DNA of 63,473 bases, the filler included, from Octopus bimaculoides (lineage: Eukaryota): assembly GCF_001194135.2 (NCBI RefSeq). It is 4 parts of 4 records of this genome, joined end to end, with 100 filler letters (N's around TTAATTAATTAA, not from the genome) between each part and the next. Parts side by side here need not be neighbours in the genome. Positions count along the whole stretch, not along the records: positions 35,993 to 53,448 come from NC_068987.1; 3 more parts are not named here. One strand, written 5' to 3'. Of this stretch, positions 12,325-52,599 are shown one piece after another (position 1 is the stretch's first letter; every line of letters starts with the position of its first letter). Made by a program: the position numbers and the translations under genes. The notes under the pieces were generated by a model. The model did no database searches. It saw only the letters and a list, made by a program, of their open reading frames with translations, and was not told the origin of the DNA.

Positions 12325-12517
12325 GTATGTGTGTATGTATATATAGATACATATGTGTATATATGCATATATATACGTGAGTGTGCACACGCTACACACA
12401 GAGAAATACACAGACTCACCTACACACAGACACACACGCACACACGTACACATGTGTGTAGGTTTGATGATACAAAGAGAAGAATAGAACTCACCGCATG
12501 AGTGTGTGTGGGGCGGC

Positions 12518-12598
<81 letters not shown>

Positions 12599-35992: not shown

Positions 35993-36317
35993 AAAAAAAA
36001 ATGGGGAAAATCTCACCAAAAATTTCCCCCATAAATTTCTTTATAATTGTAATCTATGCCATTTGAAAGGGATTCGTATAAATTTTCATTAAAAGATATC
36101 CATTTTCCTGAAAGTTATGAGGGGAAAAAAAGTCAGATCATATGAGATTTTCCAAAACGCCTCTCTCCAACCCCTCAGAAAAATTCTTTCCCATAAATCC
36201 CTATATACTCTGAAGCCACAACATCTAAGCGGTATTTGTAGAAAATGCTTTTTAAAAGTATTCATTTTTCTGGATGTTATGAGGCAACAAAGTCGAGGAT
36301 GTATACATCTACAGTAA

Positions 36318-36720
36318 TGCCCTTTTATTTATACGATTTTTTCATTTATTTCTTTCATTGTTTGCAATGTTCTCTCCTACCCTCTCTCTCTCTCACACAC
36401 ACTCACACACACACACACACACACACTACAAAGCTTACAGATTGGCTGCTGGATTGTAATCTCTATGTTACTTTGAGGGGAAGGTAAAACTTGACCAACT
36501 GCTTCTTCCTCTGTTGTTGGACTACTGTGATGTTTTTTTAAGAGAGAGAGATGATGACTGTGAATAAAATAATGAAAGCAATATTTACTAAGCAAGTGAG
36601 CACTATTATACAAAAAATAATTAGATCTAAAATATAAAAATTATTAGAATTGGGAATCAAATGTGAAAATACTATCAAAGGGCTAGCAGAAAACTGCCTG
36701 GAGGGCAGTCTTTCTGCTAG
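36318..36720 (+). mobile_element. Internally deleted Helitron-derived element with an intact 3' end
   Basis: Hairpin actgcc-tggag-ggcagt, then ctttctgCTAG|T at 36717-36721. Homologous to 36900-37798. Confidence 0.7.
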
Positions 36721-36899
36721 TATATTATTTTTGGAGAAAGCTGCTTATTAATGAGGTATGTAACAGTCACTAAAAGAAAGCAATTATTAAAGGCTTGACC
36801 ATCTGGAAGTTTTCAGGAAAATTTACTTTCTGAACTTCCTTTTATTATTGAATATTTCAAGTTCACAAATTTAAATATTCGGTACAAGATAGTTTTTAA

Positions 36900-37798
36900 C
36901 AAGCTTTTATTTATATGATATTTCATTCATTGTTTGCAATGTCCTCTCTCTCCCCAGGTTTGATTTCGTTATTACACTAATATCACATTAGAATTTTGCA
37001 ATTCAACATGGGGTATCCAAAAACATATGTGACTGAAAAAGAACATTTAACAGCAAAGGTACAATGGCAACTGAATCAGTTAAAACCAGGCAAAGCAGCT
37101 GAAACAAAAGTCTGAATTTGCACGTGGATGTAGAGATGATTCTGTTTCTGCTACTCATGACCAACTGATTAGGGTATCTTGAGAGGAGAATATTCTACTT
37201 CAAAATAAGACACTGCGTCAGCATACACCATCTATGACTGTTCAGCTGTCTACTGATAAGCAATATAAAATGGGAAGCTTTCCAAACTTCAGTGAGTTAC
37301 AAACAGAAACACCAGTGCCAACAAACGGTGCTGAGAGATGAAACTGAATATTTACAGCAGGAGTACAGATGAAAAAAATTTTCCAACTAGGAAGAATTCT
37401 GTTAAAAGATTAGCAATGAAAGCCAGTTTCAATAATTTTCAAGAACAGTCTGTCCTGTCTATTGTACAGCTACACAAAGCAGGGAGTCTCGTTGACAATG
37501 TTTGTTCATACTGCAAAGCTTACAGATGGGCTGCTGAATTGAAATCTGTATGTTGCTTTCAGGGGAAGGTAAAACTTGATGAACTGCTTCCTCCTCCATA
37601 GTTGGACTACCTTGATGTTTGTTTAAAAAAGAGAGATTATGACTGTGATAAAATAATGAAAGCAATATTTACTAAGTGTGCACTATTATACAAAGAAATA
37701 ATGAGATATAAAATATAACAATTATTAAAATTGGGAATCAAATTTTAAAATATCAAGTGGCTAGCAGAAAACTGCCCAGAAGGCAGTCTTTCTGCTAT
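36900..37798 (+). mobile_element. Longer Helitron-derived element with a RepHel N-terminal remnant
   Basis: NVCSYCKAYRWAAELKSVCCFQGKVKLDELLPPP matches the Helitron C..C.A..W..E....CC..GKV.L..L..PP motif. Same 3' hairpin, ending CTAT|T. Confidence 0.75.
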
Positions 37799-38123
37799 TA
37801 TATATAATGTTCTTTACTCTCAGGTCTATTTTCCTCGAGCTGAATTATTTTTTAAATATGTTTTTTATAGCAAAGACAGAGAAAAAAGGCAATACCCATG
37901 AACCATTTTTGAGAATTTTTGAGGCAAGGGAAAAGAGAAGAATTTAACCGTAAATGAAAATTCTGATTGGAACACTTGCAACTTTAGTTCACTCCATGGA
38001 AGATAACCAAAAGGTAGGTGATAATGTTAAGCTGGGAAACATTGTCTACCAACTAAATATCAATATTATCAATATATATAATTATTGTTATAAGTGAAAC
38101 TTGTAATATAAAACAATTTTTAA

Positions 38124-38530
38124 TCTTTTAGCATTCAGATTACTCTGTCGAGTGTAATGCTTATTTATTTTCATTGTTCTGCATTAATCATAAACTATCT
38201 CACAGCTTTGAGATTTCATTGATGTAACTGTTTCATGCTGTGCATAATAGTTTCTCTCTTTTTCTCTCCAGAAGGAGCCAATTGCATTCAGACCTGAAGA
38301 GGAATGGGTTCCACTAGGTCTCACCTTTTAACATTCAGATTTCTCTAATGCATATATATTCCCAATGTTTTGGATTAATTATGCATTATCTTGTAGCTTT
38401 GAGATTCCGATGATAATGTGATTGTTTATTTTTAGAATGACAATGTAGGGTAGGTATGAGAGGCTGGATCTGGCTGGTTTGAACATAGGATAGGCAAAAT
38501 ATTTTGACATGATGTAACCAGTTTAAAGGG
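38124..38530. mobile_element. piggyBac-like (TTAA) MITE
   Basis: TTAA|tcttttagcattcaga ... tttaaaggg|TTAA, with internal repeated tatct..tagctttgagatt. The left TIR is degenerate. Confidence 0.5.
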
Positions 38531-38679
38531 TTAAGATATAGTGAACTCAATTCTAATTAAATTCAACCATTGCAACATATGTTGGTATATCATAACCATA
38601 AAAAAATAAATCATTTTGGCTATATAATTCTGCATTAAGGGAAGGTTTTGGTTTAATTGAATGCCTGAATCAAGCCAAT

Positions 38680-39342
38680 AGTGTTGGAATATCAACCAGA
38701 GCAAATGGATCAACTCGTCACCTGCATTGTACTGCATCAACAGTAAAAACACTTTTAATACCATTTTCATAATCCTAAAACGAGATATCAATGGTTTTGT
38801 TTTGGCTTGGCTTCAGAACCTGTTGTCAAATAAGGACAGTTTGAATAGGTCATGTGTTTGGAGGAATTTCAAGGAGTTGTTGCACTTTGGACTTATCCCA
38901 GATGGTCATATGAATGCTAACCTTTATGCTCAAGAACTGCAGTGAGTATAAGATGCTTTGAAAGCCCACTACCAGGAATTGGCCAATTGAAGAAGCACTC
39001 TCCTACAGCATGACAATTCCCCAGCACAAATTTGAAGGGCTGGATGTGCTGTCACACTCTGTCTACAGTCCAAACCTTGCACAATCCGATTACCAACTTT
39101 TCTGAGTCATGGCTCATTCCCAGCATAGATGGAGGTTCGACATTGTGGATGAGACTGAAAACAGTTTTTTTCCTCTAAACTAGCCAAGTGGTATAAGCAT
39201 GAAATTGAGCTTCTGACACAATGATGGCAACAGACAATGGAATATGATTGGATATATTTTGATGAATAAAAGCTTTTCATATATAATGTTTGAATTATTA
39301 AATCAAGTTTGAAATCCCCAAAACTCTTTTGACTCAACCAGG
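38680..39342 (+). pseudogene. Mariner (DD34D) transposase remnant
   Basis: FHNPKTRYQW...CVWRNF...LLQHDNSPA...HSVYSPNLAQSDYQLF with stops and frameshifts; TIR-like end tttgactcaacc. Confidence 0.75.
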
Positions 39343-39369
39343 TATTTCCCCTAAATGAATGGAAACAAC

Positions 39370-39985
39370 CTAGTTTGTATGATGATGATGCTTGTTTACA
39401 ACTATCAGGTGATGTCTAGACAAGGGCACACATGAACATACAAACATATACATATGATGGACTTCTTTTAACTTCTATCTATCAAATACACTCACAAGCC
39501 TTTGGTCAGGCTGGAGCTATAGTAGGAAACACTTGCTCAAAGTGCTACACAGTGGAACTGAGCCTGAAACAACATGGTTGGAAAGCAAGCTTCTTAACCA
39601 TACAGCTGTGTCTGCATACAGTAGTAAAATAAAAATATAAATTTATAATACCTTATGAATGAGAGAATAGTATGTATTCTGAAGTGTACACCATGATATA
39701 TTTGCACAGCAAATGATATATAATCTAATTCTTACCCATGAAACTGGTGCCTTTTTTTCTTATAAAAGTACTCTTGATGCCATGTAAAATGCACCCATGC
39801 TGACACCATGTAAAATAGACATCCAGCACACTCTGTGAAGTGGTTGGCATTAGGAAAGACATCCAACCATAGAAGCTGTGCCAAAATGGACAATTGAAGC
39901 CTCGTACAGCTCTCTGGTTTGCTAGCTCTTTTCAAACTGCCCAACCTATGCCAGCACGGAAAACGGACAGTAAATGATGACGAGA
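39370..39985. mobile_element. Third-family SINE (minus, 39370-39610) and an RTE-like tail piece (plus, about 39790-39985)
   Basis: gacttcttttaacttc...accaaatacactcacaagcctttggtcagg... and gacatccaaccatagaa...cccaacctatgccagcacggaaaacggacagtaaatgatgac. Confidence 0.65.
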
Positions 39986-40705
39986 CTCTTAATTAGCTTT
40001 TCACATTTTATTTGTTTATGATTTCCCATGCTGTAATGTACAAGGTGGTTCTTCCTTCTCACCTTTTTTGCACATTATTAGATCGAAATGTTTTAACAGC
40101 TGTTGGTACTTACTATTGCTAATATAAATGAAGAAGTAATACCTGTTCTGTTAAGCAAACCGAAACAAGCAGAGCTATGTAGCTTCCATAAAGGTATAAA
40201 GCAAAGTATAAAGTAGTAAACATGACTAAGTTGGCAGTGCATGCATGAGAAATATATGAAATAATGATTTAACTACCTACATATCTGAGAGGGTTATTAA
40301 TAAAATTACATTTTTTTAAGCAATTAAACTCATCTTTACAATGTCATATATAAATGCTGAATATCTTCCCTTTCTAAAGACAAAGTTAATAATCTAAAAC
40401 ATTATGTTTACAATTATTCTATGTATTTTTCTCTTCTGCATAAAAATTTCAAGACACTGGTGCAGGGGGAATAACTATATATGATTCAAATATTCTTCCA
40501 CACTTATTGCATTATAAATTCTGAAAATGAAGGATGAAGACATCAAGAATCCCAGCAGAATTTGAACACAGAACAAAGAATACGTCAATGAATTTAGTGC
40601 GATACTTAACTATTTCTGCTAATTCAATAGTAGAGCATCAACACTTTGTGTTAATAACTGTATTGAAATACTAGCACTTGTGTGAATATTCTTAGTCTTC
40701 TAATA

Positions 40706-40990
40706 CAGGGGTTTTCAAACTGTGGTCCGTGGACCACAGGGGGTCCGCAAGGACAAGACGGGGGTCTGTGGACAGCAAATACTTTTTATGGGCAATTTGA
40801 TTTTATATATGTTTTTTAATCAAAATCTTTTAATTGACAATAAACCTATTTGTTAAATACTGTTAAATAAATAAATGTAAAACTATATGTCATTTCAAGC
40901 AAATATTTATGTATAAATTTCATAAGCGTTTATAAGGGTAAAGCCTAAAATATAAAGGGGTCCGCAAGTCAAAAAGTTTGAAAACCCCTG
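40706..40990. mobile_element. hAT-superfamily MITE (285 bp)
   Basis: Perfect 16-bp TIRs caggggttttcaaact / agtttgaaaacccctg; 8-bp TSD ttctaata / ttctaaca (7 of 8 match); subterminal ggggtccgcaag repeats. Confidence 0.88.
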
Positions 40991-42093
40991 TTCTAACATA
41001 TTTTCAAGTTTCAGTTTAANNNNNNNNNNNNNNNNNNNNNNNNNNNNNNNNNNNNNNNNNNNNNNNNNNNNNNNNNNNNNNNNNNNNNNNNNNNNNNNNN
41101 NNNNNNNNNNNNNNNNNNNNNNNNNNNNNNNNNNNNNNNNNNNNNNNNNNNNNNNNNNNNNNNNNNNNNNNNNNNNNNNNNNNNNNNNNNNNNNNNNNNN
41201 NNNNNNNNNNNNNNNNNNNNNNNNNNNNNNNNNNNNNNNNNNNNNNNNNNNNNNNNNNNNNNNNNNNNNNNNNNNNNNNNNNNNNNNNNNNNNNNNNNNN
41301 NNNNNNNNNNNNNNNNNNNNNNNNNNNNNNNNNNNNNNNNNNNNNNNNNNNNNNNNNNNNNNNNNNNNNNNNNNNNNNNNNNNNNNNNNNNNNNNNNNNN
41401 NNNNNNNNNNNNNNNNNNNNNNNNNNNNNNNNNNNNNNNNNNNNNNNNNNNNNNNNNNNNNNNNNNNNNNNNNNNNNNNNNNNNNNNNNNNNNNNNNNNN
41501 NNNNNNNNNNNNNNNNNNNNAGAAAAAAATAAATAAAAAATTCCACCCTCAAAAGAAAAAAAATAAATCTATATCATGTAATTAACAGCCAAATTTTTAC
41601 ATGGATTTTTTTAACATTTTTTTCTTCATTTATTTTTGTTGCATAGCTCATCTAAAGTCTTTGCATTTAACGTGATTTGTTAAAATATTGGCTTTGAATC
41701 ATTTGACAATGTTACCATACAAAAAGAAGTATAAGAAAAAAGAAAAAAAAAACAAGCCACAAAATCAACATAACGGTGGAAAAATATTTTCAATAACAAT
41801 TAGTTAGCTAATTATTCACTTAATTAATAGGACAGTTGGATGACAGTGGTCTATTCTGTTTCTTAAGAATAAGTCTTTCATCTATCTCAATAAAACCTCT
41901 GATTAACTTCTTTCTTGTCTATTTTTTTTTCTTTGTTGTTGTAACATCAGGCATACCTGAGGATCTGTTCAATGATTAAAAATCGGAATAAAAGAATCCA
42001 CACCACGCCACACCACCAAGCCCTGCTCAAAGGCACCATGGAATTAAAAGAGAATTAGAACTAAAAAGCAGTATCAAAATACTATTATATATA

Positions 42094-42129
<36 letters not shown>

Positions 42130-43083
42130 TATATATATCGTTAATGTCTTATCACACATATTTTATAGTGTGAGACACAGCAGGTATCAATATTCACGAA
42201 TTAAGATTGTTATTTTCATTTTCTTTTNNNNNNNNNNNNNNNNNNNNNNNNNNNNNNNNNNNNNNNNNNNNNNNNNNNNNNNNNNNNNNNNNNNNNNNNN
42301 NNNNNNNNNNNNNNNNNNNNNNNNNNNNNNNNNNNNNNNNNNNNNNNNNNNNNNNNNNNNNNNNNNNNNNNNNNNNNNNNNNNNNNNNNNNNNNNNNNNN
42401 NNNNNNNNNNNNNNNNNNNNNNNNNNNNNNNNNNNNNNNNNNNNNNNNTATATATATATACTTATAGATATACATATATACATATACATACATGTATATA
42501 TATATACACACACATACATATACACACATATATACATACATATATATACACACAAACATACATACACGCAAATATATATATGCATATATATACGTATGTA
42601 CATATATATATAGACATAATATATATATACACACACATTTATACATACATATATATACACACACATTCACACAAACATACGTACATAAATGCAATTGCCC
42701 CATGATAGACTGGTACTCACTTTTACTTAATATATTTTAAGTAGAAAAATGAATATAAAATGTGAAGCTATAACTAACATGAGGCAATTGTTTTAGTCTA
42801 AACACAGATCTCAGGTCAACGCATTTGCCAAGCAAGTGCAACTGAAGAATACACACACGCACACACACACACACAATGTATTTATATATAAATACATTGT
42901 ACGCGCATAAGCATCCATAACCTTGCGCACACACACACACACATATGCTTATATACCAACACATGTAAAAAGTTTATGATGTTTCATAATAGATGCCAAA
43001 TCAATTAGATTAGTAGTTGAACAAAGAATAAAGTAGTTTTACAGTCTCTTCTTTCCTCTTCATCTGTAAACTATGCAAAGCAT

Positions 43084-43225
43084 TTAGCCTTCCCAGCCAG
43101 TGTATTTGTCCAAGACAGATGAAATGTACTTTGCCATGTCAACATCTAAAGTATCTGCTCGTACAATAAAAGGGTGCTCCAACAGTGTGCCATAATAAGG
43201 TCGCTCTTTGTATTCCTTTTGAAGA
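43084..43225 (-). CDS. MAP2K3/6: MAP2K3/6-like, last coding exon (subdomain XI and C-terminal DVD docking region)
   Basis: ctctatttcag acceptor, then T+LQKEYKERPYYGTLLEHPFIVRADTLDVDMAKYISSVLDKYTGWEG-TAA. Aligns with the MKK C-terminus (CL.K..ERP.Y..L..HPF ... D.A..V..IL). Confidence 0.9.
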
Positions 43226-43319
43226 CTGAAATAGAGAAAGGAGAATGAGATAAATATATTGGATTAATCTCATTTTATGTGACGTCTGACTCAGTTATTT
43301 ATATTCTGTTTCAGAGACT

Positions 43320-45070
43320 GAGCCATAATTGTGAGGTTAAGAAGCGTGCTTCCGAACTATGTAGCTTATGTCTCCTTTTATAGACCTGGAGTGATCAAGC
43401 CTTGCAAGTAGATTTGGTAGATGGAAACTGAAAGAAGCCTATCATATAAGCAATGCAGTTTGCTTTCAGTCTTCCTGAAAAAACATGTCTAGCCAACGTA
43501 AAAAAAATATTACTTTGCTTGGAAACAGATAAGGGTTGGTGACATGAAATGCATCCAGACACAGAAAATTGACCTCAATAGATTCCACCTAACTTATGCA
43601 AGCATGGAAAAGTGGATGTTAAAACAATGATGATGATGATACTGCATATAATTTTCAGATCATTTCCATTATAACCTGTCCAAAACCTACCTGGGTAATC
43701 TGCACCCCTTGAGACTACCTCCAATTTTTTTAGTACCACAACCTGTTTAATGATGAACCATATTTTATGCAACCTCCTTTTCAAAAAAGGTCACCCATGC
43801 CTACTCTATAGCCATGCATAGTTTATATTACTTCATGTTTAGTGCATCTTGGTGGCAGTCTTAATTCTTGTTTTTTTACTGTTTCTGATAGTTTTTTTTT
43901 TTTTTGCTTTTAGAAAAAGCAGTACAAAATAACATATTTTACAATAATCATCATTTATCCTTTTCTCATAAATAAAAAAAATAAATCTGAAAATTTTTCA
44001 GCAACTTAAACATTGTTCAGTTGATTTATGTCAAGACGCATTCTTTGTCTTGTGCTCACATGCCTTCCTTTTAAAAAATCTTTGTTCTATAACATGTAAG
44101 TTTCAAGGTCACAGAAAAATTTAATGTATCATATTTAGTTTAGTTTTTTTTTAAATTATTCCATTTNNNNNNNNNNNNNNNNNNNNNNNNNNNNNNNNNN
44201 NNNNNNNNNNNNNNNNNNNNNNNNNNNNNNNNNNNNNNNNNNNNNNNNNNNNNNNNNNNNNNNNNNNNNNNNNNNNNNNNNNNNNNNNNNNNNNNNNNNN
44301 NNNNNNNNNNNNNNNNNNNNNNNNNNNNNNNNNNNNNNNNNNNNNNNNNNNNNNNNNNNNNNNNNNNNNNNNNNNNNNNNNNNNNNNNNNNNNNNNNNNN
44401 NNNNNNNNNNNNNNNNNNNNNNNNNNNNNNNNNNNNNNNNNNNNNNNNNNNNNNNNNNNNNNNNNNNNNNNNNNNNNNNNNNNNNNNNNNNNNNNNNNNN
44501 NNNNNNNNNNNNNNNNNNNNNNNNNNNNNNNNNNNNNNNNNNNNNNNNNNNNNNNNNNNNNNNNNNNNNNNNNNNNNNNNNNNNNNNNNNNNNNNNNNNN
44601 NNNNNNNNNNNNNNNNNNNNNNNNNNNNNNNNNNNNNNNNNNNNNNNNNNNNNNNNNNNNNNNNNNNNNNNNNNNNNNNNNNNNNNNNNNNNNNNNNNNN
44701 NNNNNNNNNNNNNNNNNNNNNNNNNNNNNNNNNNNNNNNNNNNNNNNNNNNNNNNNNNNNNNNNNNNNNNNNNNNNNNNNNNNNNNNNNNNNNNNNNNNN
44801 NNNNNNNNNNNNNNNNNNNNNNNNNNNNNNNNNNNNNNNNNNNNNNNNNNNNNNNNNNNNNNNNNNNNNNNNNNNNNNNNNNNNNNNNNNNNNNNNNNNN
44901 NNNNNNNNNNNNNNNNNNNNNNNNNNNNNNNNNNNNNNNNNNNNNNNNNNNNNNNNNNNNNNNNNNNNNNNNNNNNNNNNNNNNNNNNNNNNNNNNNNNN
45001 NNNNNNNNNNNNNNNNNNNNNNNNNNNNNNNNNNNNNNNNNNNNNNNNNNNNNNGTTGTATACATGTGTG

Positions 45071-45152
<82 letters not shown>

Positions 45153-45436
45153 ACTTGACAACCGATGGTGGAGTGTTTACATCCCCATAACTTAGCGGTT
45201 CGGCAAAAGAGACTGCTAGAATAAGTACTAGGCTTTTAAAGAATAAGTCCTGGGGTCGATTTGCTCGACTAAAGGCAGTGCTCCAGCATGGCCACAGTCA
45301 AATAACTGAAACAAGTAAAAGTGGATGATCAAAAATAAATGAGTCAATTTCCAGATATCTATCAACTGGAAATGCTTTGAGTGTGCACTCAGAATATTCA
45401 TATATATATATATATATATATATATTCAAGCCTTGA

Positions 45437-45467
<31 letters not shown>

Positions 45468-47990
45468 AAGTTATACAAATTGTATAGTTATATAAAGTTA
45501 TAACTTTAAATATATAAATATAAAACCATAATTTTTACTTTATTTCATGGACTAATAAAATAGTTTCTAATTTAGGCACAAAGTCAACAATTTGTGGGGA
45601 GGGGTTTACTCGATATCATCAACCCCAATACTTAACAGGTGCTTCATTTTATCAACTCAGAAAGGAATTGAAGACAAAGTTGACCTTAGAAGGATTTAAA
45701 CCCAGAATGGAGAAAAGCCCTGCATTGTATTATTGGCATTCTAACGGTTCTGCCAGCTTGCAGTGTTTTGCACTAACATTATAATATTAAATAAATAGGT
45801 GCAGGCAGGGCTGCATGGTTAAGTTCCTTTCCCAACCATGAGGTTCATAACCATGTGATCCCATTTCATGGTGCCTTAAGTGTCTCTACCATAGCTTCAG
45901 ATTTACTAATGCTTGAGCGAAATTTGAAAACCAGAAGCAGCTTGACAGCCCATTACAGGTAAGTGTGTGTATATGCATTGGTAAAGGGTTGCTATGATTT
46001 AATATGGACAAATGATACAAATTGAACACTATATGGTATTTATCATGTACAAGTTAAATCCCTTTATGCAGAGGAAGCATTACCTGCTTCATGTACAGAA
46101 ATTAATGAAATAAACACCAGTATTTTGCAGATATAATTTCACTAAAATCTTTAAAAGAGGTGCCCCCAGCATGGTTGCAGTCCAATGACTGAAACCAGTA
46201 ACAATAACAGTATCTTTTATCTTTTGTTTCAGTCATTAGATATTTTTTATCAGTCTCCTTCACTGAACCACTAGGCTGCACCAACACTGGTTGTCAAGTA
46301 GTGATAGAAGACAAACACACGCACATATATATGACGGGCTTCTTTGTTTCCATTTACCAAATCTATTCACAAGATTTTGGCTGGCCTAAGGCTATAAGGG
46401 AAGATGCACTTGCCTAAGGTGCCATGCAGTGAGACTGAATTTAAGAACAATGTGGTTGAGAAACAAGCTTCTTATCACACAGCCACACTTATAATTAACT
46501 TTTGATATCAACAATTAGTAATAATTGCAATTATACATTATTGGGTAAACAACCATGTTATTTTCAGGGATAAGACATAGATGAGAATTGTAATACTCTT
46601 GTGATTTTCAGAGACATTTGTGAATTGGAATGGCTCTGAATGAAGAATTCAGAAAAATCAAAAGACTCCATTCATTAGAAGCATATTTTGCCAAAATATA
46701 TTTAAATGAAGATGTCTAACAAAGGTGCAAGACCATACAATTAAAGGGTAAAGGGACATAGTAAATAATAATGATCCCAATACCCAACTGTTATTATACT
46801 GCCTGGAGGGGTGAAAAGCCAAGTTGACCTCAGTGCTATTTGATCTCCAAATGCAAAGGGAGATAACTAAGTCCTGCAAGGCATTTTGCCCATCACTCTA
46901 CTGATTCTGTCAATCCTTTGCCAAAAAGTATCAAATAATAAAAAGAAGAATCTCAAGAATGCGCTGAATAAAAACAGCATTAAAAAAGGAATGCTAATTC
47001 TTTCTTAATCATAGATTCCATAATGCTGATAATCAACTGTAGTTTTTATGGTTCTTAGCAGTTGAAGAGGAAAATGCCCTCAATGCCAGCTTATCATCAA
47101 TAAACTTCTCCAGGTATGGCTGTGTAGTAAAAAGTTTCCCAACCACATGGTTCTGGGTTCAGTCCCACTGCATGGCACCTTGAGCAAGTGTCTTCTACTA
47201 TAGCTCTGAGCTGACCAAAGCCTTGAGTGGATTTGGTAGACAAAAACTGGAAGGAGCCTGTAGTATGTATATACATATGTATATGTGGGTGAATATGCAT
47301 GTGACATTGTGATAGTTGTAAATAATTGTCCCTGTCATACAAGCAGCATAATTTCATTTCCATTATTCTGAGACCATTTCTGACCACACGGAAAAATTAC
47401 CTTGCTTGGAAACAGTTGCGGATTGGTGAAAGGAAGAGCGTCTGCTGTAGAAAATCTACCTCAATAAGCTCCACTAACCCATGCAGGCATGGAAAAGTGG
47501 ATGTTAAAATAATAGTGATGGTGATATAAACTAAAACACACTTTATAGTTAGGTAAACCAACTAGAGATTTAATATGGACAGTAGTCTAGTGCCTTTGAC
47601 AGTATAGCTTTCAGGTGATACTACTTGCAACATTTTCTATTTAATTATTTAAAGTGGTGATAACCTGTTCACTGCCCCTCCTCTGTAAGTTTAATCAGTT
47701 ATCTTTTTTTTTTTATCTTTGACTTGTTTTGGTCCCTGGACTGTGGCCATGCTGGGACACTGTCTTGAAGGGTTTAGTCAAACGCCCCCAGTACTTATTC
47801 TATCTGTCTCTTTCGCCAGTCTGCTAAGTTAGAGGGACAGAAACAAACCAGCACTGGTTGTGAAGCGAAAGGTGTGGCACAAACATAACTCAAAGACAGA
47901 CATATGATGGGTTTCTTTCAGTTTCTGTCTATCAAATCTACTCACAGGGTTTTGGTCAAGTAGAAGACGCCTGCCCAAGGTGCTGTGCTT
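43320..47990. mobile_element. Cluster of third-family SINE pieces in both orientations inside a MAP2K intron
   Basis: Plus-strand pieces at about 43320-43640, 45130-45325, 45795-45990, 46150-46200 and 47110-47530. Minus-strand pieces at about 46210-46495 and 47700-47990. All share gagtggatttggtaga/ggaaactgaaagaagc or aatgactgaaac motifs. Confidence 0.75.
45540..45770 (-). mobile_element. Decayed SINE (tail B)
   Basis: ttctaatttaggcacaaag...ggggagggg...caaagttgacc...ttctgccagcttg. Confidence 0.65.
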
Positions 47991-48048
47991 TCTATATTTC
48001 TCTTATAGATAGTTCTTATTGGGGAACATCATCATAACAACAACAAAA

Positions 48049-49825
48049 CTATGTTCTCAACTATTTTTTGTCTGTGGACACCTTTGATTCCTATTTTACC
48101 CTCCAACCCCCCATAACAAAATATTATCAGAAATTTTATTAAAACATTCTTAAAATATTGTGTATTGTAGACGTATAACCAATTTATTGCTCATAAACTT
48201 TAATGATAGAGGCACTGATGTAAAGATGTTTGCTCAACAGAAAGTAACTTTACCAAAAGGAAAGTACAAGATAATTATTTTAGATGGAGCAGACAGGTAA
48301 ATAATCTGTGTCATTAGAAAAATATTTGCATCTCTCACTTCTTTATTTCATTGAAATCTTATCTCATCATTGTTTTCATAACCATCATCTTCCTTGGCAG
48401 CATCATGATCTAGTTTCCATATCACGATATGAAAGACATTACTCATTGGTTTTTTTGGTGTCTGATGCTTTTATCCTCGTGTAGTCGTGTAGCTCCTCTA
48501 CAGCAAGATACCTGTTTCTGTCTACCTGTCACACTTTAACCTCACATCACTTGGCACACAGCCACCTCCCTGAATACTACAACTCCTCAGTTAAAGGGTC
48601 GTGTCTTGTAAGTTATACCTAAATAGCATCCAGTACATTCTATAAAGTGACTGGCATTAGGAGGTGCATCCAGCTGTAGAAACCATGCCAGATCAGACAG
48701 TTGAGCTTGGCACAGTCCTCTGACCTACCAGGTCCTGCTGAACCAGTCAATTCATACCAACAGGCAAAACAGGTATTAAATGGTGATGGTGATGATAATG
48801 AGGTTTTTCATTCATTTGTGACATTATGCTTCAAGATCACTGAATTCAATATAATTCATAACATAATAAGTATATTATTGTGAAAGGGGAGACTTATTTT
48901 AGTCTTTTGCTATACTTTGATGCTTGGACATATATTAGCCTATAATCCTTGGATGAAATGATATGGGATCAAACACATTGATTGTACTGTAGATTCGAGT
49001 TACAGTAAGAATGATAGAAAAGCATATTGTGTACGGTGATGATATATACACACATGCATGTATGTGTGTGTATGTGTGTTGTTATTCAATGATTGGTAGA
49101 GATATTTTTTTAATATTTAGTTTTGTAAATATTGTGAAGCAGAAATATACTTTTTGTCAATTTCTGTTATTTATACATGAAAAAGTACCCCATACTGAGT
49201 AAATTATGTACACTTACTGCTCTGCAACAAAGATATTGTTCAACAAGTTCAAATTTTGATCAAGCATTTTATTATTTAAATAGATAATTTTGGTTTCAAA
49301 ATTTGGCACATGGTCAGCGAGTTAAGGGGAGGGTGGTAGTCAATTACATCAACCTCAGTGCTCAATTGGTACTTATTTTATCAGCTCCAAAAGGATGAAA
49401 GGCAAAGTCGATCCCAGTGGAATTTTTTAAGGTGGCATAGTGGCTGTGTTTCTTTCGAAGGTTGAGCCCCACAAAGGCAATGATCAAGACGTTTGGCCTT
49501 ATGTTGTGCTTGAGAAGAAGACCTTTCAAGTGGAACAAAATTACAGTCATGGTGGATACCAGTGTCACACAAATGGCACCTGTACTGGTGGCACGTAAAA
49601 GCACCCATTACACTCTCAGAGTGGTTGGCATTAGAAAGGGCATCCAGCTGTAGAAAACCATGCCAAATCAGACTGGAGCCTGGCACAGCCTTCCAGCGTG
49701 CCAGCCCAGTCAAACTGTCCAACCCATGCCAGCATGGACAACAGACATTAAATGATGATGATGAAACTAACAACAAAATCATATGGACCCCCAAGGATCA
49801 TACAGACCCCAGTTGAGAACCACTG
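48049..49825 (+). mobile_element. Split hAT MITE (same family as 51437-51664) enclosing about 1.6 kb of insert with the RFC2 fragment and SINEs
   Basis: 48049-48201 aligns to the left ~190 bp of the intact copy (gttctcaac...ctttgattcctattttac...aatttattgct). About 49774-49825 aligns to its right end (aaaatc..tatggacccc...gttgagaaccactg). The outer left TIR is degraded and no TSD was found. Confidence 0.65.
48202..48296 (+). pseudogene. RFC2: Degenerate RFC2 (replication factor C subunit 2) exon fragment, antisense within a MAP2K intron
   Basis: Translates [31 protein letters not shown](S) followed by AG|gtaaat. RFC2 reads [37 protein letters not shown], so there is an in-frame 5-aa deletion and a Walker B E-to-G change. 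No other RFC2 exons were seen. Confidence 0.85.
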
Positions 49826-49839
49826 AATTAAGGTCTTAC

Positions 49840-49917
49840 CATAGTAATTCCTAAACTCCAAACATCAGATCTTATATCATAACCTTTTCCTGAAACTGAA
49901 GGGTTGATTCTTTCAGG
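49840..49917 (-). CDS. MAP2K3/6: MAP2K3/6-like, next internal exon (subdomains VIII-IX)
   Basis: 78-bp phase-0 exon with ttccag acceptor and ATG|gtaaga donor. Translates PERINPSVSGKGYDIRSDVWSLGITM, continuing directly from PYMA. Not in the ORF track. Confidence 0.93.
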
Positions 49918-50219
49918 CTGGAATATAAAAATAGAGAAAAAATAACATACAGATTTTGTTTTTATAATGAAGGAAAACAATTTTACAGTTTTTCATAAAT
50001 AAATAGAACACTGATTTTTTAATGTTATTTTCTTCAGACTGTCACACAGAACTTGTACAATCCAACTCATTTGTAATAAAACATTTTAACATAATTGAAA
50101 GAGGTTTCAAGCATAATGTTCTTCTACTTCTGACATCGTCATCATTTAATGTCCAATTATGAAATCACAAACAGACATCCAAGCCTGCATCTACACTCAC
50201 ACAAAAAGGCTATCAGAAT

Positions 50220-50470
50220 GATTGTCATAAAGTTGTTTGTCAACACACTCCAACCTCAATCATAGACATGCTGTCTCTAAACTGCATTTTCAACCATCAT
50301 TACTACTATGGCCTTTGCTCCTTATAGTATATGTCACCTCCATTCAGACATGCTTAATTCACTCATTCCTCCTCTATCCTCACACTAACCACTATACTCA
50401 GTCCTTCCTTCCCAGAATGTTGTATCTCTGGAATTCACTCGCTGCTTATGTTTCTCTTGCAATTATCAAG
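50220..50470 (+). mobile_element. CR1/L2-like LINE 3' fragment
   Basis: LNHRHAVSKL...HTNHYTQSFLPRMLYLWNSL matches the L..RR...L / SF.PRT...WNSLP end of CR1/L2/Jockey-group ORF2. Confidence 0.6.
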
Positions 50471-50595
50471 AAACAACTGCTTAAGAACACTGTAACTGAA
50501 TTGAGTCCATTGGTATTAAAGTCAGAATTATCAAAAATTGCAGGTGAAGTTTCTACCACCTCTCCACAACTACCACAACAAAAATCTATCTATTT

Positions 50596-50850
50596 AAATA
50601 ATAATAATAATTGGTGCAGTGGGAACTGTAAGCAAAGATATAGACAAATGGTTGAAGGAGATTGGAATAGAATGCCCTGTGGAGCTTCTACAGAAAGTTT
50701 GCCCTTTAGGGACAGGAAAGATTATCAAGAGGGTCTTAAGCACTTGAAAGACTATTGAAAGATTGTGGATACCTAAGGTTACAGATAGTAACCCAGCTAC
50801 CCACATAGATTATACCAAGAATAAGAATGAACCTGAGTCAAATCAATGAT
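50596..50850 (+). mobile_element. 5'-truncated copy of the same RLE LINE 3' end
   Basis: IIGAVGTVSKDIDKWLKEIGIECPVELLQKVCPLGTGKIIKRVLST*, with a 3' UTR matching the reverse complement of 1500-1730 (cctaag.ttacagatagtaaccc). Confidence 0.8.
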
Positions 50851-51143
50851 GATAATGATGATATAATTAGCTTGTTGTAAGCAGTGCTCAAGTGCAACAT
50901 GGGTAATTGAAAAAGGGTTAAAGACAAGACAGAAAGTGATAAGGAAGACAGCAACGAAAGCCAAAAACTCATGCAGAGTACATGGAATAAAACACAAAAG
51001 TGAACAGTAGAAGAGCTATAAAGAAGAAGGTGCATAGGGACATCAAGAGTAGTGCTGATAAATTACAGGAAGAAAGGCACTTTTGAAGAATCTGATGTTC
51101 TTATAGCTAACAATTGAAGTGCATTCCATTCTTTGGTAATTCT

Positions 51144-51388
51144 TTTTTTTTTTTGCTTTTTTTTTTTACTGCCCACAAGGGGCTACACAGAGGGGACGAA
51201 CAAGGACAGACAAACGGATTAAGTCGATTATATCGACCCCAGTGCGTAACTGGTACTTATTTAATCGACCCCGAAAGGATGAAAGGCAAAGTCGACCTCG
51301 GCGGAATTTGAACTCTGAACATAGCGGCAGATGAAATACCGCTAAGCATTTCGCCCAGCGTGCCAACGTTTCTGCCAGCTTGGCACCT
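51144..51388 (-). mobile_element. Young full-length tRNA-headed SINE (Deu/Nin-like core, tail type A)
   Basis: Poly-A tail (T run at 51144-51168), CpGs retained, and a 15-bp TSD TTCTTTGGTAATTCT at 51129-51143 and 51389-51403. Confidence 0.9.
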
Positions 51389-51436
51389 TTCTTTGGTAAT
51401 TCTGTGTGTGGAAAAATGCTTTCCAAAGTCATAGAT

Positions 51437-51664
51437 CAGTGTTTCTCAACCATTTTTCCCCTATGGACCCCTTTGATTCCTATTTTACACAGATGGACCC
51501 TCATAGCCATCCAATGTTTAAAAAATACTATTATATTTTTATAATTAAATATTATTAGGAATTGTATAAAAAATTGTTAAAATATTTTGTGTATTGTACA
51601 ACAAATTTATTGCTGATGAATTTTAACAATAAAATCTCGTATGGACCCCAGTTGAGAACCACTG
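51437..51664. mobile_element. Intact hAT-superfamily MITE (228 bp)
   Basis: TIRs cagtgtttctcaac / gttgagaaccactg, with a perfect 8-bp TSD TCATAGAT at 51429-51436 and 51665-51672. Confidence 0.92.
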
Positions 51665-52174
51665 TCATAGATGTGCTGTCTTTTGATTTTATAAGCATGT
51701 CTATAGGTAATAGAGATAATCTCCAAGGAAATTAGTGGCGGTATGTGGGATGTCGAAGAAAAAGGGTTAATAATTATGAGATAAGTTTGTGCAGAGTGAT
51801 GCGAGTTGAATTTTAATATTTTAATCAGGGTCACACTTCTGATAGGCTTTGTTTAAAATGTTTTAACTGATCTTCTATCAAAATACACAAACTGTTATTT
51901 TATAAATTTTATCAACAGACTCCACACAGGTACAGACATGCTTATTTCACATATAATACATATAATGCTCTAGACAGACAGACACGAACACATGCACACA
52001 CACACACACATGCACACACGCGCACACACAAGAAAGTGGCAGCCCTCATTATTATGTGCAAAGCTGGCAACAGGCAGTAAAACTGAAGATGGAAATCCTG
52101 CAGACATGGAAATAAAAGAAGTTGATGATGGTGATAATTAAAGCAGTGATGATAGTGGAAAAATTTCTACTTAC

Positions 52175-52354
52175 TGCCATATATGGTCGACAACCAGCAT
52201 CTCTGGTGTTAGCAAGAGAATCTACTAGGTAGCCACTGATGCCAAAATCACATATTTTGACAAAACCCAATCTGTTAACTAAAATATTTGATGGTTTCAC
52301 ATCCCTGTGGATTACCTGGAGGTTCTGATGAAGGTAATGCAGTGCACGTACCAC
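52175..52354 (-). CDS. MAP2K3/6: MAP kinase kinase 3/6-like (p38 activator), internal exon, kinase subdomains VIa-VIII
   Basis: 180-bp phase-0 exon with ttgtag acceptor and GCA|gtaagt donor. Translates [60 protein letters not shown]: HRD, DFG and the S-x-A-x-T activation loop; GYLVDS is typical of MKK3/6. Confidence 0.93.
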
Positions 52355-52599
52355 CTACAATGGAAAAATTAAATATTTAGGTAAACAACAAAATGAAAAG
52401 GAACAGAAAGTTTGTACCTATCATTCAACATTTATTTTTGCATCATTGTTGATGGAAATTATAATGGGGAGGGGAATGAATAGTTGTGTAGTAAAAAGTT
52501 TGCTTCCCAACTACATGTGGCAGATATTTGGAAATGACCTGCTGTACTGCTTGGCATTTGCACCGGAAGCTCCAATATGAACAGATGGTGAATACACAG

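Follow-up and report, generated by a model that had tools for sequence, protein, structure and literature searches.

The stretch of DNA analysed here (the window; 63,473 nucleotides, filler included, from Octopus bimaculoides) carries on its minus strand three exons of an MKK4-like (MAP2K) gene (52354-52166, 49917-49840 and 43245-43105). The middle exon (PERINPSVSGKGYDIRSDVWSLGITM; 49840..49917) has a GTAAGA donor that lies about 14-15 nt from the right end of a hAT-type miniature inverted-repeat transposable element (MITE). Since exons on the minus strand lie on either side of it, the MITE and the cargo that splits it are intronic and antisense to the host gene, which is where the initial annotation had placed them. 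A protein search with 86 aa of the MKK4 exons returned short fragments only, with identities of 75% or less and none from a cephalopod; short queries seem to reach short database proteins only. Inside the MITE lies a decayed fragment of the DNA-replication gene RFC2, 1.56 kb in all, in which a single exon is followed by the beginning of its downstream intron.

The MITE and its sibling

An intact sibling of the MITE (228 bp, plus strand, 51437..51664), with the terminal inverted repeats CAGTGTTTCTCAACC and AGTTGAGAACCACTG, provides a reference for the uninterrupted element. It is flanked by a perfect 8-bp target-site duplication, TCATAGAT, at 51429-51436 and 51665-51672, which is close to the NYYTARRN consensus (PMC3014272). 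The hAT-type terminal repeat CAGTGKTTCTCAACY, present at 51437, 51664 and 49825, has the motif listed for the terminal repeats of SPIN and hAT-N1 in Anolis (PMC3014272), and the 15-nt terminal-repeat pattern occurs three times in the window against 0.13 expected.

The interrupted element consists of a left part with a SPIN-like terminal repeat (48049..48199, plus strand) and a right part (49766..49825, plus strand). In local alignment 48054-48208 matches 51443-51631 of the sibling, and self-BLAST recovers 48054-48099 and 48113-48203 as matches to it. At the left end the terminal repeat has degenerated (CTATG-TTCTCAACT), and the right part aligns to the right end of the sibling with a perfect terminal repeat, AGTTGAGAACCACTG. 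The two parts are colinear and on the same strand, and together they span the whole sibling. They overlap on it, the left part running to 51631 and the right part beginning at about 51617-51622, so that no MITE position is lost. The split hAT MITE, with collinear halves that resume near the same point, is thus as the initial annotation described it. No 8-bp target-site duplication can be recognised around the split element itself (CAACAAAA versus AATTAAGG); when the missing AATTAAGG duplication was sought in the window, none was found near the left end. No further copy of the MITE, with the cargo or without it, was found in the window, in the RFC2 loci of the three octopus species compared below or in a metagenome scan, and no autonomous hAT copy was found in the window or in those three loci.

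The RFC2 copy and its parent

A tblastn search with human RFC2 as the query finds one RFC2-like segment within 48049-49825, at 48202-48294 on the plus strand (27/36 residues, E=1e-10), with a five-residue gap at VRNKI and AG|GTAAAT directly after it; the RFC2-like exon with its GT donor was therefore correctly recognised at the outset. The parental gene, located with an X-masked metazoan RFC2 consensus as the query, is the O. bimaculoides RFC2 locus L001 (CM046601.1; protein P0246). Positions 48210-49765 of the window are colinear with its coding exon 4 and the first ~1.54 kb of its 2.05-kb intron 4, and the full colinear alignment opens with the initial base of that exon and closes with the tail of a SINE in the intron. 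The identity is 87.3% over 1277 bp between 48221-49468 and L001 11249-12502, and 83% over 335 bp between 49431-49765 and L001 12549-12865. The intron copy is also colinear with RFC2 of O. sinensis and O. vulgaris.

Two checks that the initial annotation proposed come out positive in this comparison. The sequence after the donor does match the parental RFC2 intron, and parental RFC2 does have a phase-2 intron at NDR|G, with the split codon AG|G. The DR|G intron is widespread, though not universal, as an exhaustive representative search gave exon-sized RFC2 ORF fragments from many animals; parental RFC2 was absent among those fragments. A homologous-protein search with the 46-aa pseudo-exon ORF gave no match, again with a query of the short kind that seems to reach short database proteins only, and exact look-up of two window ORFs gave no matching contigs.

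The decayed exon 4 (48210..48296, plus strand) aligns to L001 11223-11324 and to protein P0246. The parent exon has 102 nt, and the copy has lost 15 of them in one deletion, TGTTCGCAACAAAAT (VRNKI). It also has seven transitions, among them those behind I>T, R>K, H>Y and E>G relative to the real octopus protein; the in-frame loss of VRNKI and the change of DEAD to DGAD, first noticed from the window alone, thus hold against the true parent. The K and Y of KGKY were considered as parental residues and rejected: the octopus protein has KGRH, so both are mutations of the copy. The intron copy (48297..49765, plus strand), which begins with the GTAAAT donor, aligns to L001 11325-12865 with 1292 matches and 136 mismatches in aligned columns. 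Substitutions amount to 7/87 plus the 15-nt deletion in the exon part and to 136/1428 in the intron part. The overall substitution divergence is 9.4% (K2P 0.10), with ten indels. The copy is decaying neutrally, at about the rate of its intron, and by its sequence it seems to bear no sign of function, the Walker B motif (DEAD) being broken.

Three SINE segments lie in the intron copy. A full-length tRNA-like SINE in sense orientation (49430..49765, plus strand), with an A-box-like TGGCATAGTGG at 49433-49443 and a B-box-like GGTTGAGCCCC at 49460-49470, forms the 3' end of the copy with its terminus TAAATGATGATGATGAA, which is also the putative priming site. An older SINE of the same family (48617..48800, plus strand) is recovered by self-BLAST of 48617-48792 against 49593-49764 and occupies the same place in L001; the parental intron thus contained it already, and it was a passive passenger of the copying. 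The third segment, the 5' part of a second SINE family (49338..49425, plus strand), is 82% identical to 51222-51309. In the parent, this second-family SINE is interrupted by the terminal SINE and its rest follows the tail of the latter, and the part in the window is likewise a passive passenger. Other SINE copies were searched for target-site duplications by exact match, and none was recovered, because the copies are too old.

Junctions and origin of the insert

Homology with the parental intron does not distinguish between the possible origins of the cargo, as it is expected from capture of genomic DNA and equally from unspliced RNA. Under the refuting condition set in the initial annotation, it would have spoken for capture. 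The junctions do discriminate. At the 3' side, parental homology stops at TAAATGATGATGATGA(A), the canonical 3' terminus of the SINE, where window position 49765 corresponds to L001 12865. The terminus is defined from copies within the RFC2 loci: two other copies of the terminal SINE family (L002 6763 and L003 15323, one per species) have the same terminus and unrelated flanks. Beyond it, all three parental loci continue into the remainder of the second SINE, whereas the window continues into MITE sequence. The cargo has no poly(A) at this end, its terminus being (GAT)n.

Both sides of the cargo carry about 9 bp, GATGAAACT and CATAAACT, that represent the same positions of the MITE and form a putative target-site duplication. 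The right copy (GATGAAACT, 49760..49768, plus strand) shares its first 6 nt with the SINE tail, and the left copy (CATAAACT, 48192..48199, plus strand), derived from GATGAAACT, differs from the right one (7/9, with one gap of 1 nt). Of the nine bases, six coincide with the SINE tail (GATGAA), so that ACT alone is unambiguously duplicated.

At the 5' side, genomic homology to the parent begins at the first base of exon 4. The bases before it resemble the end of coding exon 3, a sequence that does not vary among O. bimaculoides, O. sinensis and O. vulgaris: TTTAATGATAG at 48199..48209 (plus strand), a candidate exon 3 remnant that would mark the 5' truncation point, matches the exon 3 end TCTAATGACAG in 9/11 positions, and the last eight bases, AATGATAG, match AATGACAG in 7/8. 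The same 8-mer matches the 3' end of the parental intron in 3/8, the sibling MITE in 5/8 and the right-hand MITE copy in 4/8 positions, and over the 18 nt before the exon 4 copy the match to the parental intron is 7/18. The proposal that these bases encode RFC2's own N-D-R is favoured by this comparison, on a short stretch. The MITE itself reads TTTAACAATAA there (8/11), and with a remnant of 8-11 nt the spliced junction rests on few transitions. That AATGATAG is plain MITE sequence, within a 13-bp duplication, is less likely, as it needs four transitions from the right-hand copy where exon 3 needs one. Given that homology sets in exactly where exon 4 begins, the exon-3-like bases suggest that the upstream intron (intron 3) was probably spliced out of the template and the downstream intron (intron 4) kept.

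The exon-3-like 5' bases, the 3' end at a SINE terminus and a MITE that is intact save for a short duplication point to retroposition into a pre-existing MITE. The segment 48199-49765 is thus most probably a 5'-truncated, partly processed RFC2 retropseudogene fragment, presumably mobilised by a LINE and inserted into a resident hAT-type MITE. This was the second alternative of the initial annotation, a partly spliced RFC2 cDNA inserted into a resident MITE, and the evidence favours it. Partially processed retrogenes are known (PMC5470649), and LINEs that recognise the 3' end of a SINE have been described, as have microsatellite-like tails for priming (PMC3747384, PMC6007223). Octopus genomes consist of about 12% SINEs and have active RTE, CR1, Dong-R4 and L1-Tx1 LINEs (PMC13282606).

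The template and the junctions are read directly from the alignments, and the enzymology can be reconstructed as follows. The template would be an RFC2 pre-mRNA from which intron 3 had already been spliced and in which intron 4 was retained. A LINE reverse transcriptase would have engaged this RNA at the (GAT)n terminus of the sense SINE, ~1.5 kb into intron 4, the priming presumably taking place at a SINE tail inside a Pol II transcript. Target-primed reverse transcription would have begun at the MITE site (T)GATGAA, which is able to pair with the SINE tail. The cDNA would then have extended back through the SINE, the remaining intron and exon 4, and stopped after 8-11 nt of exon 3. The outcome would be an insertion, flanked by a duplication of ~9 bp, in a hAT-type MITE resident in the MKK4-like intron, the MITE being a passive target and the copy later decaying neutrally. 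A poly(A)-dependent form of the event, in which the transcript was cleaved and polyadenylated within the intron just after the ATTAAA of the SINE and the A-tail was lost later, is kept as a minor variant only. The A-rich stretch that follows the tail matches the sibling MITE in 11/12 positions and leaves no room for an A-tail.

Two DNA-level routes would also bring intron sequence into the MITE. A templated insertion, in which repair of a double-strand break in the MITE copied the RFC2 locus by microhomology, with neither reverse transcription nor transposon activity, would account as well for the microhomology at both junctions, GATGAA between SINE tail and MITE and TTTAA-like bases at the 5' side. 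However, it needs two coincidences, one boundary falling within 1 nt of an exon start with upstream-exon-like neighbours and the other at the exact end of a SINE, and a simple break duplicates no target bases; we regard it as improbable. Even less probable is the headline claim of the initial annotation, that the MITE captured or transduplicated genomic RFC2 DNA (e.g. by template switching during post-excision gap repair) and the chimera then transposed into the MKK4 intron. The genuine intron sequence of the cargo is what DNA-level capture predicts, and the cargo is indeed bracketed by colinear MITE parts, with the right terminal repeat perfect. However, no internal MITE sequence was replaced, and where the cargo meets the MITE a few bases occur twice; the 3' boundary lies exactly at the canonical SINE terminus, and the 5' genomic boundary coincides exactly with the start of exon 4, where the bases just ahead resemble exon 3 and not the parental intron. 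The split MITE, moreover, has no recognisable 8-bp target-site duplication and its left terminal repeat is degenerate. The claim of capture is therefore not sustained by the junctions, which are those of an insertion into an intact MITE. Finally, coincidental bracketing by two unrelated truncated MITE copies, or a mis-join of RFC2 sequence in a draft assembly with N gaps, can hardly be credited: the split MITE has no matching flanking duplications and its subfamily is judged from one sibling, but its parts are colinear, on the same strand, cover the whole sibling and overlap at one point, there is no N in 48049-49825, and 9.4% substitutions with ten indels from the true RFC2 locus indicate a real diverged paralogous copy rather than misplaced gene reads.

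Comparison with known systems

The RFC2 copy is an ordinary kind of genomic fossil and belongs to a known class, the partially processed retropseudogenes. Partially processed retrogenes include rat preproinsulin I (Soares et al. 1985, cited in PMC5470649). Like them, the RFC2 copy would be RNA-derived, with one intron probably removed and another retained; it is truncated at its 5' end, has a putative short duplication on its two sides, lacks a promoter and is decaying. The RFC2 copy differs from them in that it comprises one exon and part of one intron only, and in that its 3' end is the tail of an intronic SINE rather than an mRNA poly(A) site, with no poly(A) tract visible.

The mobilisation of SINEs by partner LINEs, as with eel UnaL2 and UnaSINE1 and the RTE-related SINEs (PMC3747384, PMC6007223), offers a likeness at the 3' end, where the insert ends in a short microsatellite-like repeat. 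The putative duplication at the RFC2 copy starts with bases identical to the tail repeat, which fits annealing of a nicked target to the tail. A difference is that the reverse-transcribed RNA would reach ~1.2 kb further upstream than the SINE and take in intron and exon of the host gene.

Upstream host sequence is also carried by other elements. In hominids, SVA and L1 are known for 5' transduction and exon trapping (PMC10681720, PMC12593883), reportedly described by Hancks et al. (2009) and by Damert et al. (2009). There, as would be the case for the RFC2 copy, a non-autonomous element in the sense direction within a gene is retrotransposed with upstream host sequence that includes spliced exon sequence, the template RNA having begun at a point upstream of the element. 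SVA usually splices host exons onto the element, whereas the RFC2 copy retains an intron between exon and SINE. In place of an SVA or L1 with poly(A) there is a short tRNA-like SINE that ends in a (GAT)n tail, which implies a stringent LINE partner, one that recognises a 3' end, rather than L1 with poly(A). Set against SVA and L1 transduction, the RFC2 copy is a single decayed instance, with no evidence of a propagating lineage.

These likenesses allow a more general proposal, which we consider doubtful: that a LINE recognising the 3' end of a SINE can start on such an element within host pre-mRNA and proceed into the intron and exons upstream of it, so that intronic SINEs serve as general anchors for 'SINE-anchored exon transduction', recurrent in cephalopods. 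If this is true, the RFC2 copy would be a single fossil left by a route of exon and intron shuffling that recurs in SINE-rich octopus genomes. If such events are frequent in cephalopods, with about 12% SINE and several active LINE clades, they would be an added source of exon-bearing fragments inside genes. The locus is in any case a clean worked example in a mollusc of a half-spliced pre-mRNA that appears to have been retro-copied from an intronic SINE tail, with the parent known in three species.

What the RFC2 copy has in common with transduplication by Pack-MULEs, Helitrons and hAT elements is a host-gene fragment enclosed by DNA-transposon terminal repeats. Unlike the products of transduplication, it has a probably spliced upstream exon, an end at a SINE tail, a putative target duplication inside the MITE, no loss of MITE sequence and no evidence of mobilisation with the cargo in the sequences scanned, a junction anatomy that argues for insertion into the MITE and not for acquisition by it. 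The main value of the locus is thus a corrected annotation: the appearance of host-gene capture by an animal hAT MITE is better explained by a retrocopy inserted into such an element, and it is junction anatomy, not bracketing by terminal repeats, that decides between capture and insertion.

The RFC2 parent and the content of the copy

A local tblastn search with human RFC2 found one RFC2-like segment only in the piece at 35993-53448 (NC_068987.1), at 48202-48294 (27/36 identical residues, a 5-residue gap, E=1e-10). The queries with human RFC2 and MKK4 were solely for locating exons. The initial annotation described this segment, an intact sibling MITE and the two parts of a split MITE correctly, and tblastn and alignments found each of them. 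An exhaustive search with the pseudo-exon ORF brought up numerous RFC2 ORF fragments of exon size in other animals. Many of these open with junk before 'RGIDVV...' and close with '...DEADR', and therefore phase-2 introns lie on both sides of the exon in many lineages. Not every lineage has the intron at DR|G, which some of those represented among fragments P0122-P0232 lack. In the protein databases, these fragments include many single RFC2 exons read into intron junk, from ORF calling on animal genomic contigs. The parent was reached with an X-masked metazoan RFC2 consensus query, which matched 'replication factor C subunit 2 [Octopus bimaculoides]' (P0246, 347 aa), encoded by locus L001 (GCA_001194135.2, CM046601.1:71492381-71515404). 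The RFC2 loci of O. sinensis (L002) and O. vulgaris (L003) were obtained likewise via the encoding contigs.

Aligned globally, cargo and parent are colinear from the start of coding exon 4 (L001 11223) through L001 12865. BLASTN matches 48221-49468 to L001 11249-12502 (87.3% over 1277 bp) and 49431-49765 to L001 12549-12865 (83% over 335 bp); the aligned columns hold 1372 matches and 143 mismatches (9.4%, K2P 0.10), with ten indels in addition to a 15-nt deletion in the exon. RFC2 resumes with its next exon at L001 13371, which gives a length of 2046 bp for intron 4, and the copy takes in about 1.54 kb of this. The intron homology that the initial annotation thought might follow the donor is present, and the cargo consists of exon 4 and most of intron 4. 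The exon deletion removes TGTTCGCAACAAAAT, which encodes VRNKI, and all seven exon substitutions are transitions, the protein-changing ones including I>T, R>K, H>Y and E>G relative to P0246. The exon copy is evidently under no constraint, because its divergence (8.0%) is close to that of the intron (9.5%).

Three SINE sequences lie in the cargo: an older copy at 48617-48800, the 5' portion of a member of a second SINE family at 49338-49425 and, at 49430-49765, a tRNA-like SINE of full length. Each is found at the corresponding place in the parental intron, and likewise in O. sinensis and O. vulgaris, so they were in the RFC2 intron before copying and were copied passively. The head of the parental SINE in O. 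bimaculoides has a ~84-nt tandem duplication (L001 about 12494-12577) that the retrocopy does not have.

Junctions and the mode of insertion

The identity and colinearity of parent and copy, and three features of the junctions, are direct observations. The copy most probably arose by LINE-mediated retroposition of a part-spliced RFC2 pre-mRNA. The template would be a pre-mRNA with intron 3 out and intron 4 still in. Reverse transcription, presumably by a LINE enzyme, would be primed at the (GAT)n end of the intronic SINE, at a nick in the resident MITE, which supposes that a SINE tail inside a Pol II transcript can serve for priming, and cDNA synthesis would stop a few bases into exon 3. Insertion of a part-spliced RFC2 cDNA into a resident MITE, one of two origins put forward in the initial annotation, is thus favoured by the exon-3-like bases, the SINE-tail end and the intact MITE positions.

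At the 3' junction, homology to the parent ends with ...TTAAATGATGATGATGAA at 49765. Beyond this point, all three parental loci continue with CATAAAGAC..., the rest of the second SINE, which the terminal SINE interrupts, and the window continues with ACTAACAACAAAATCATATGGACCCC..., which is MITE. Two further copies of the terminal SINE family, one per species (L002 6763 and L003 15323), share the end TAAATGATGATGATGA and have unrelated flanks, and the cargo therefore stops at the canonical 3' terminus of the family. The terminal SINE points in the sense direction of RFC2, which an RNA-templated event with priming at the SINE tail would need. In a less likely variant, the transcript was cleaved and polyadenylated just after the ATTAAA of the SINE and the A-tail was lost later; however, the A-rich bases after the tail match the MITE at 11/12 positions.

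The left part of the split MITE ends '...GCTCATAAACT(TT)' and the right part begins '(GATGA)AACTAACAACAAAATC', where the sibling reads 'GCTGATGAATTTTAACAATAAAATC'. The best parse of the target duplication is 9 bp, GATGAAACT, with a left copy CATAAACT (7/9 with a 1-nt gap). The first six bases of this putative duplication are identical to the SINE tail, as predicted by target-primed reverse transcription for a nicked target that pairs with a microsatellite-like tail (PMC6007223, PMC3747384). Since ACT only is unambiguously duplicated, the duplication by itself would be modest evidence for target-primed insertion.

At the 5' junction, the parental acceptor region ...tttttctataAG|G GGC ATT corresponds to ...aaactttaatgatag|A GGC ACT in the window. 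Of the 18 nt upstream of exon 4, only 7 agree with the parental intron, which places the start of genomic homology at the first base of exon 4. Exon 3 ends ...GCT TCT AAT GAC AG|gtttga in all three species, and the window matches this end at 7/8 (AATGATAG) or 9/11 positions (TTTAATGATAG). The 8-mer agrees less well with the end of the parental intron (3/8), with the sibling MITE (5/8) and with the right-hand copy of the MITE (4/8). This short stretch is most simply read as a probable spliced exon 3-exon 4 junction, truncated 8-11 nt into exon 3. Templated repair at the DNA level is unlikely, as a start within one base of the exon boundary would have to be chance.

Alignment places the left part of the split MITE (48054-48208) on 51443-51631 of the sibling and the right part (49766-49825) on its right end, and no MITE position is missing at the cargo site. 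The other origin put forward in the initial annotation, capture of RFC2 by the hAT MITE, is accordingly not borne out and is very unlikely: its defining feature is cargo acquired by an element with its interior replaced, and here the interior is not replaced. Coincidence or artefact is scarcely credible.

The sibling (51437-51664) is a typical MITE of 228 bp; its termini are the repeats CAGTGTTTCTCAACC / AGTTGAGAACCACTG, and a perfect target-site duplication of 8 bp, TCATAGAT, flanks it. The terminal repeat CAGTGKTTCTCAACY is present in the sibling and at 49811-49825 in the split copy. This 15-nt motif is the same as that of SPIN and hAT-N1, hAT superfamily elements in the lizard Anolis with the target consensus NYYTARRN (PMC3014272). 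The sibling duplication and the right flank of the split copy, AATTAAGG, each match 5/6 specified positions of the consensus. The flanks of the split MITE (48041-48053, left, CAACAAAA; 49826-49833, right) hold no matching 8-bp duplication, and no 8-mer like the right flank lies nearby upstream. In the split MITE the left terminal repeat has degenerated (CTATG-TTCTCAAC). A (CAT)n(CAA)n-like tract borders this end, which may therefore have undergone remodelling. SPIN has undergone horizontal transfer across animal phyla, and a SPIN-like MITE in octopus may merit a proper family comparison.

Genomic setting and age

The feature at 48049-49825 is intronic in an MKK4-like MAP2K gene, because minus-strand exons of this gene lie at 52354-52166 (HRDVKPSN...DFGISG...CRPYMA), 49917-49840 (PERINPS...DVWSLGITM, donor GTAAGA) and 43245-43105 (C-terminal). 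The RFC2-like segment runs on the other strand, and the right end of the split MITE is about 14-15 nt from the GTAAGA donor. The 1.8-kb composite insertion is unusually near the splice site of this exon (window 49826-49917, minus strand). For the part of the kinase that links ...SLGITM (49840) to the C-terminal exon, no exon was detected in the piece; the N gap 44167-45054 may contain it. The piece is of draft quality, with three N gaps and many SINE-like repeats and microsatellites. A near-perfect 63-bp palindrome (45400-45462) adjoins an N gap, and another repeat family has two direct copies (36422-36725 and 37507-37803, 86% over 305 bp). In the next MKK4 intron, an 83-aa ORF (52613-52864, plus strand; …VWQQDYAPCHTSRRIQS) resembles a Tc1/mariner-type DDE transposase remnant.

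On 1514 ungapped columns, the K2P distance of the copy is 0.106 to the O. bimaculoides parent, 0.127 to O. vulgaris and 0.151 to O. sinensis; that between O. bimaculoides and O. vulgaris is 0.071. Informative sites (25:3:1) group the copy with O. bimaculoides in an unrooted quartet, which is compatible with origin in the lineage or before the split. The copy has a long private branch (101 sites vs 34-36), which speaks for an origin no later than the species split. On a published clock (JC 0.065 ~ 18 My, 0.09 ~ 25 My; PMC13282606), the event would be of the order of 15-20 My old. RFC2 intron 4 has extra blocks in O. sinensis (L002 7457-7835, 8127-8349 and 8618-8859) and O. vulgaris (L003 7528-7903, 8142-8355 and 8685-8927), several of which are copies of the (GAT)n-tailed SINE family. 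Their absence from O. bimaculoides and the retrocopy suggests that SINE insertion continued in the O. sinensis/O. vulgaris lineage after the split.

Comparison with known systems

Partially processed retrogenes have long been known (PMC5470649). How frequent SINE-anchored retro-copying of pre-mRNA pieces is in cephalopods is a question of interest. The RFC2 locus falls outside Pack-MULE-like capture because its cargo was not acquired in place of the element interior. For SVA, 5' transduction and exon trapping are known ways in which host sequence lying upstream of a non-autonomous element is retrotransposed; the RFC2 locus would combine a part-processed retrogene with such upstream host sequence in a mollusc, and its element is a tRNA-like SINE with a non-poly(A) tail.
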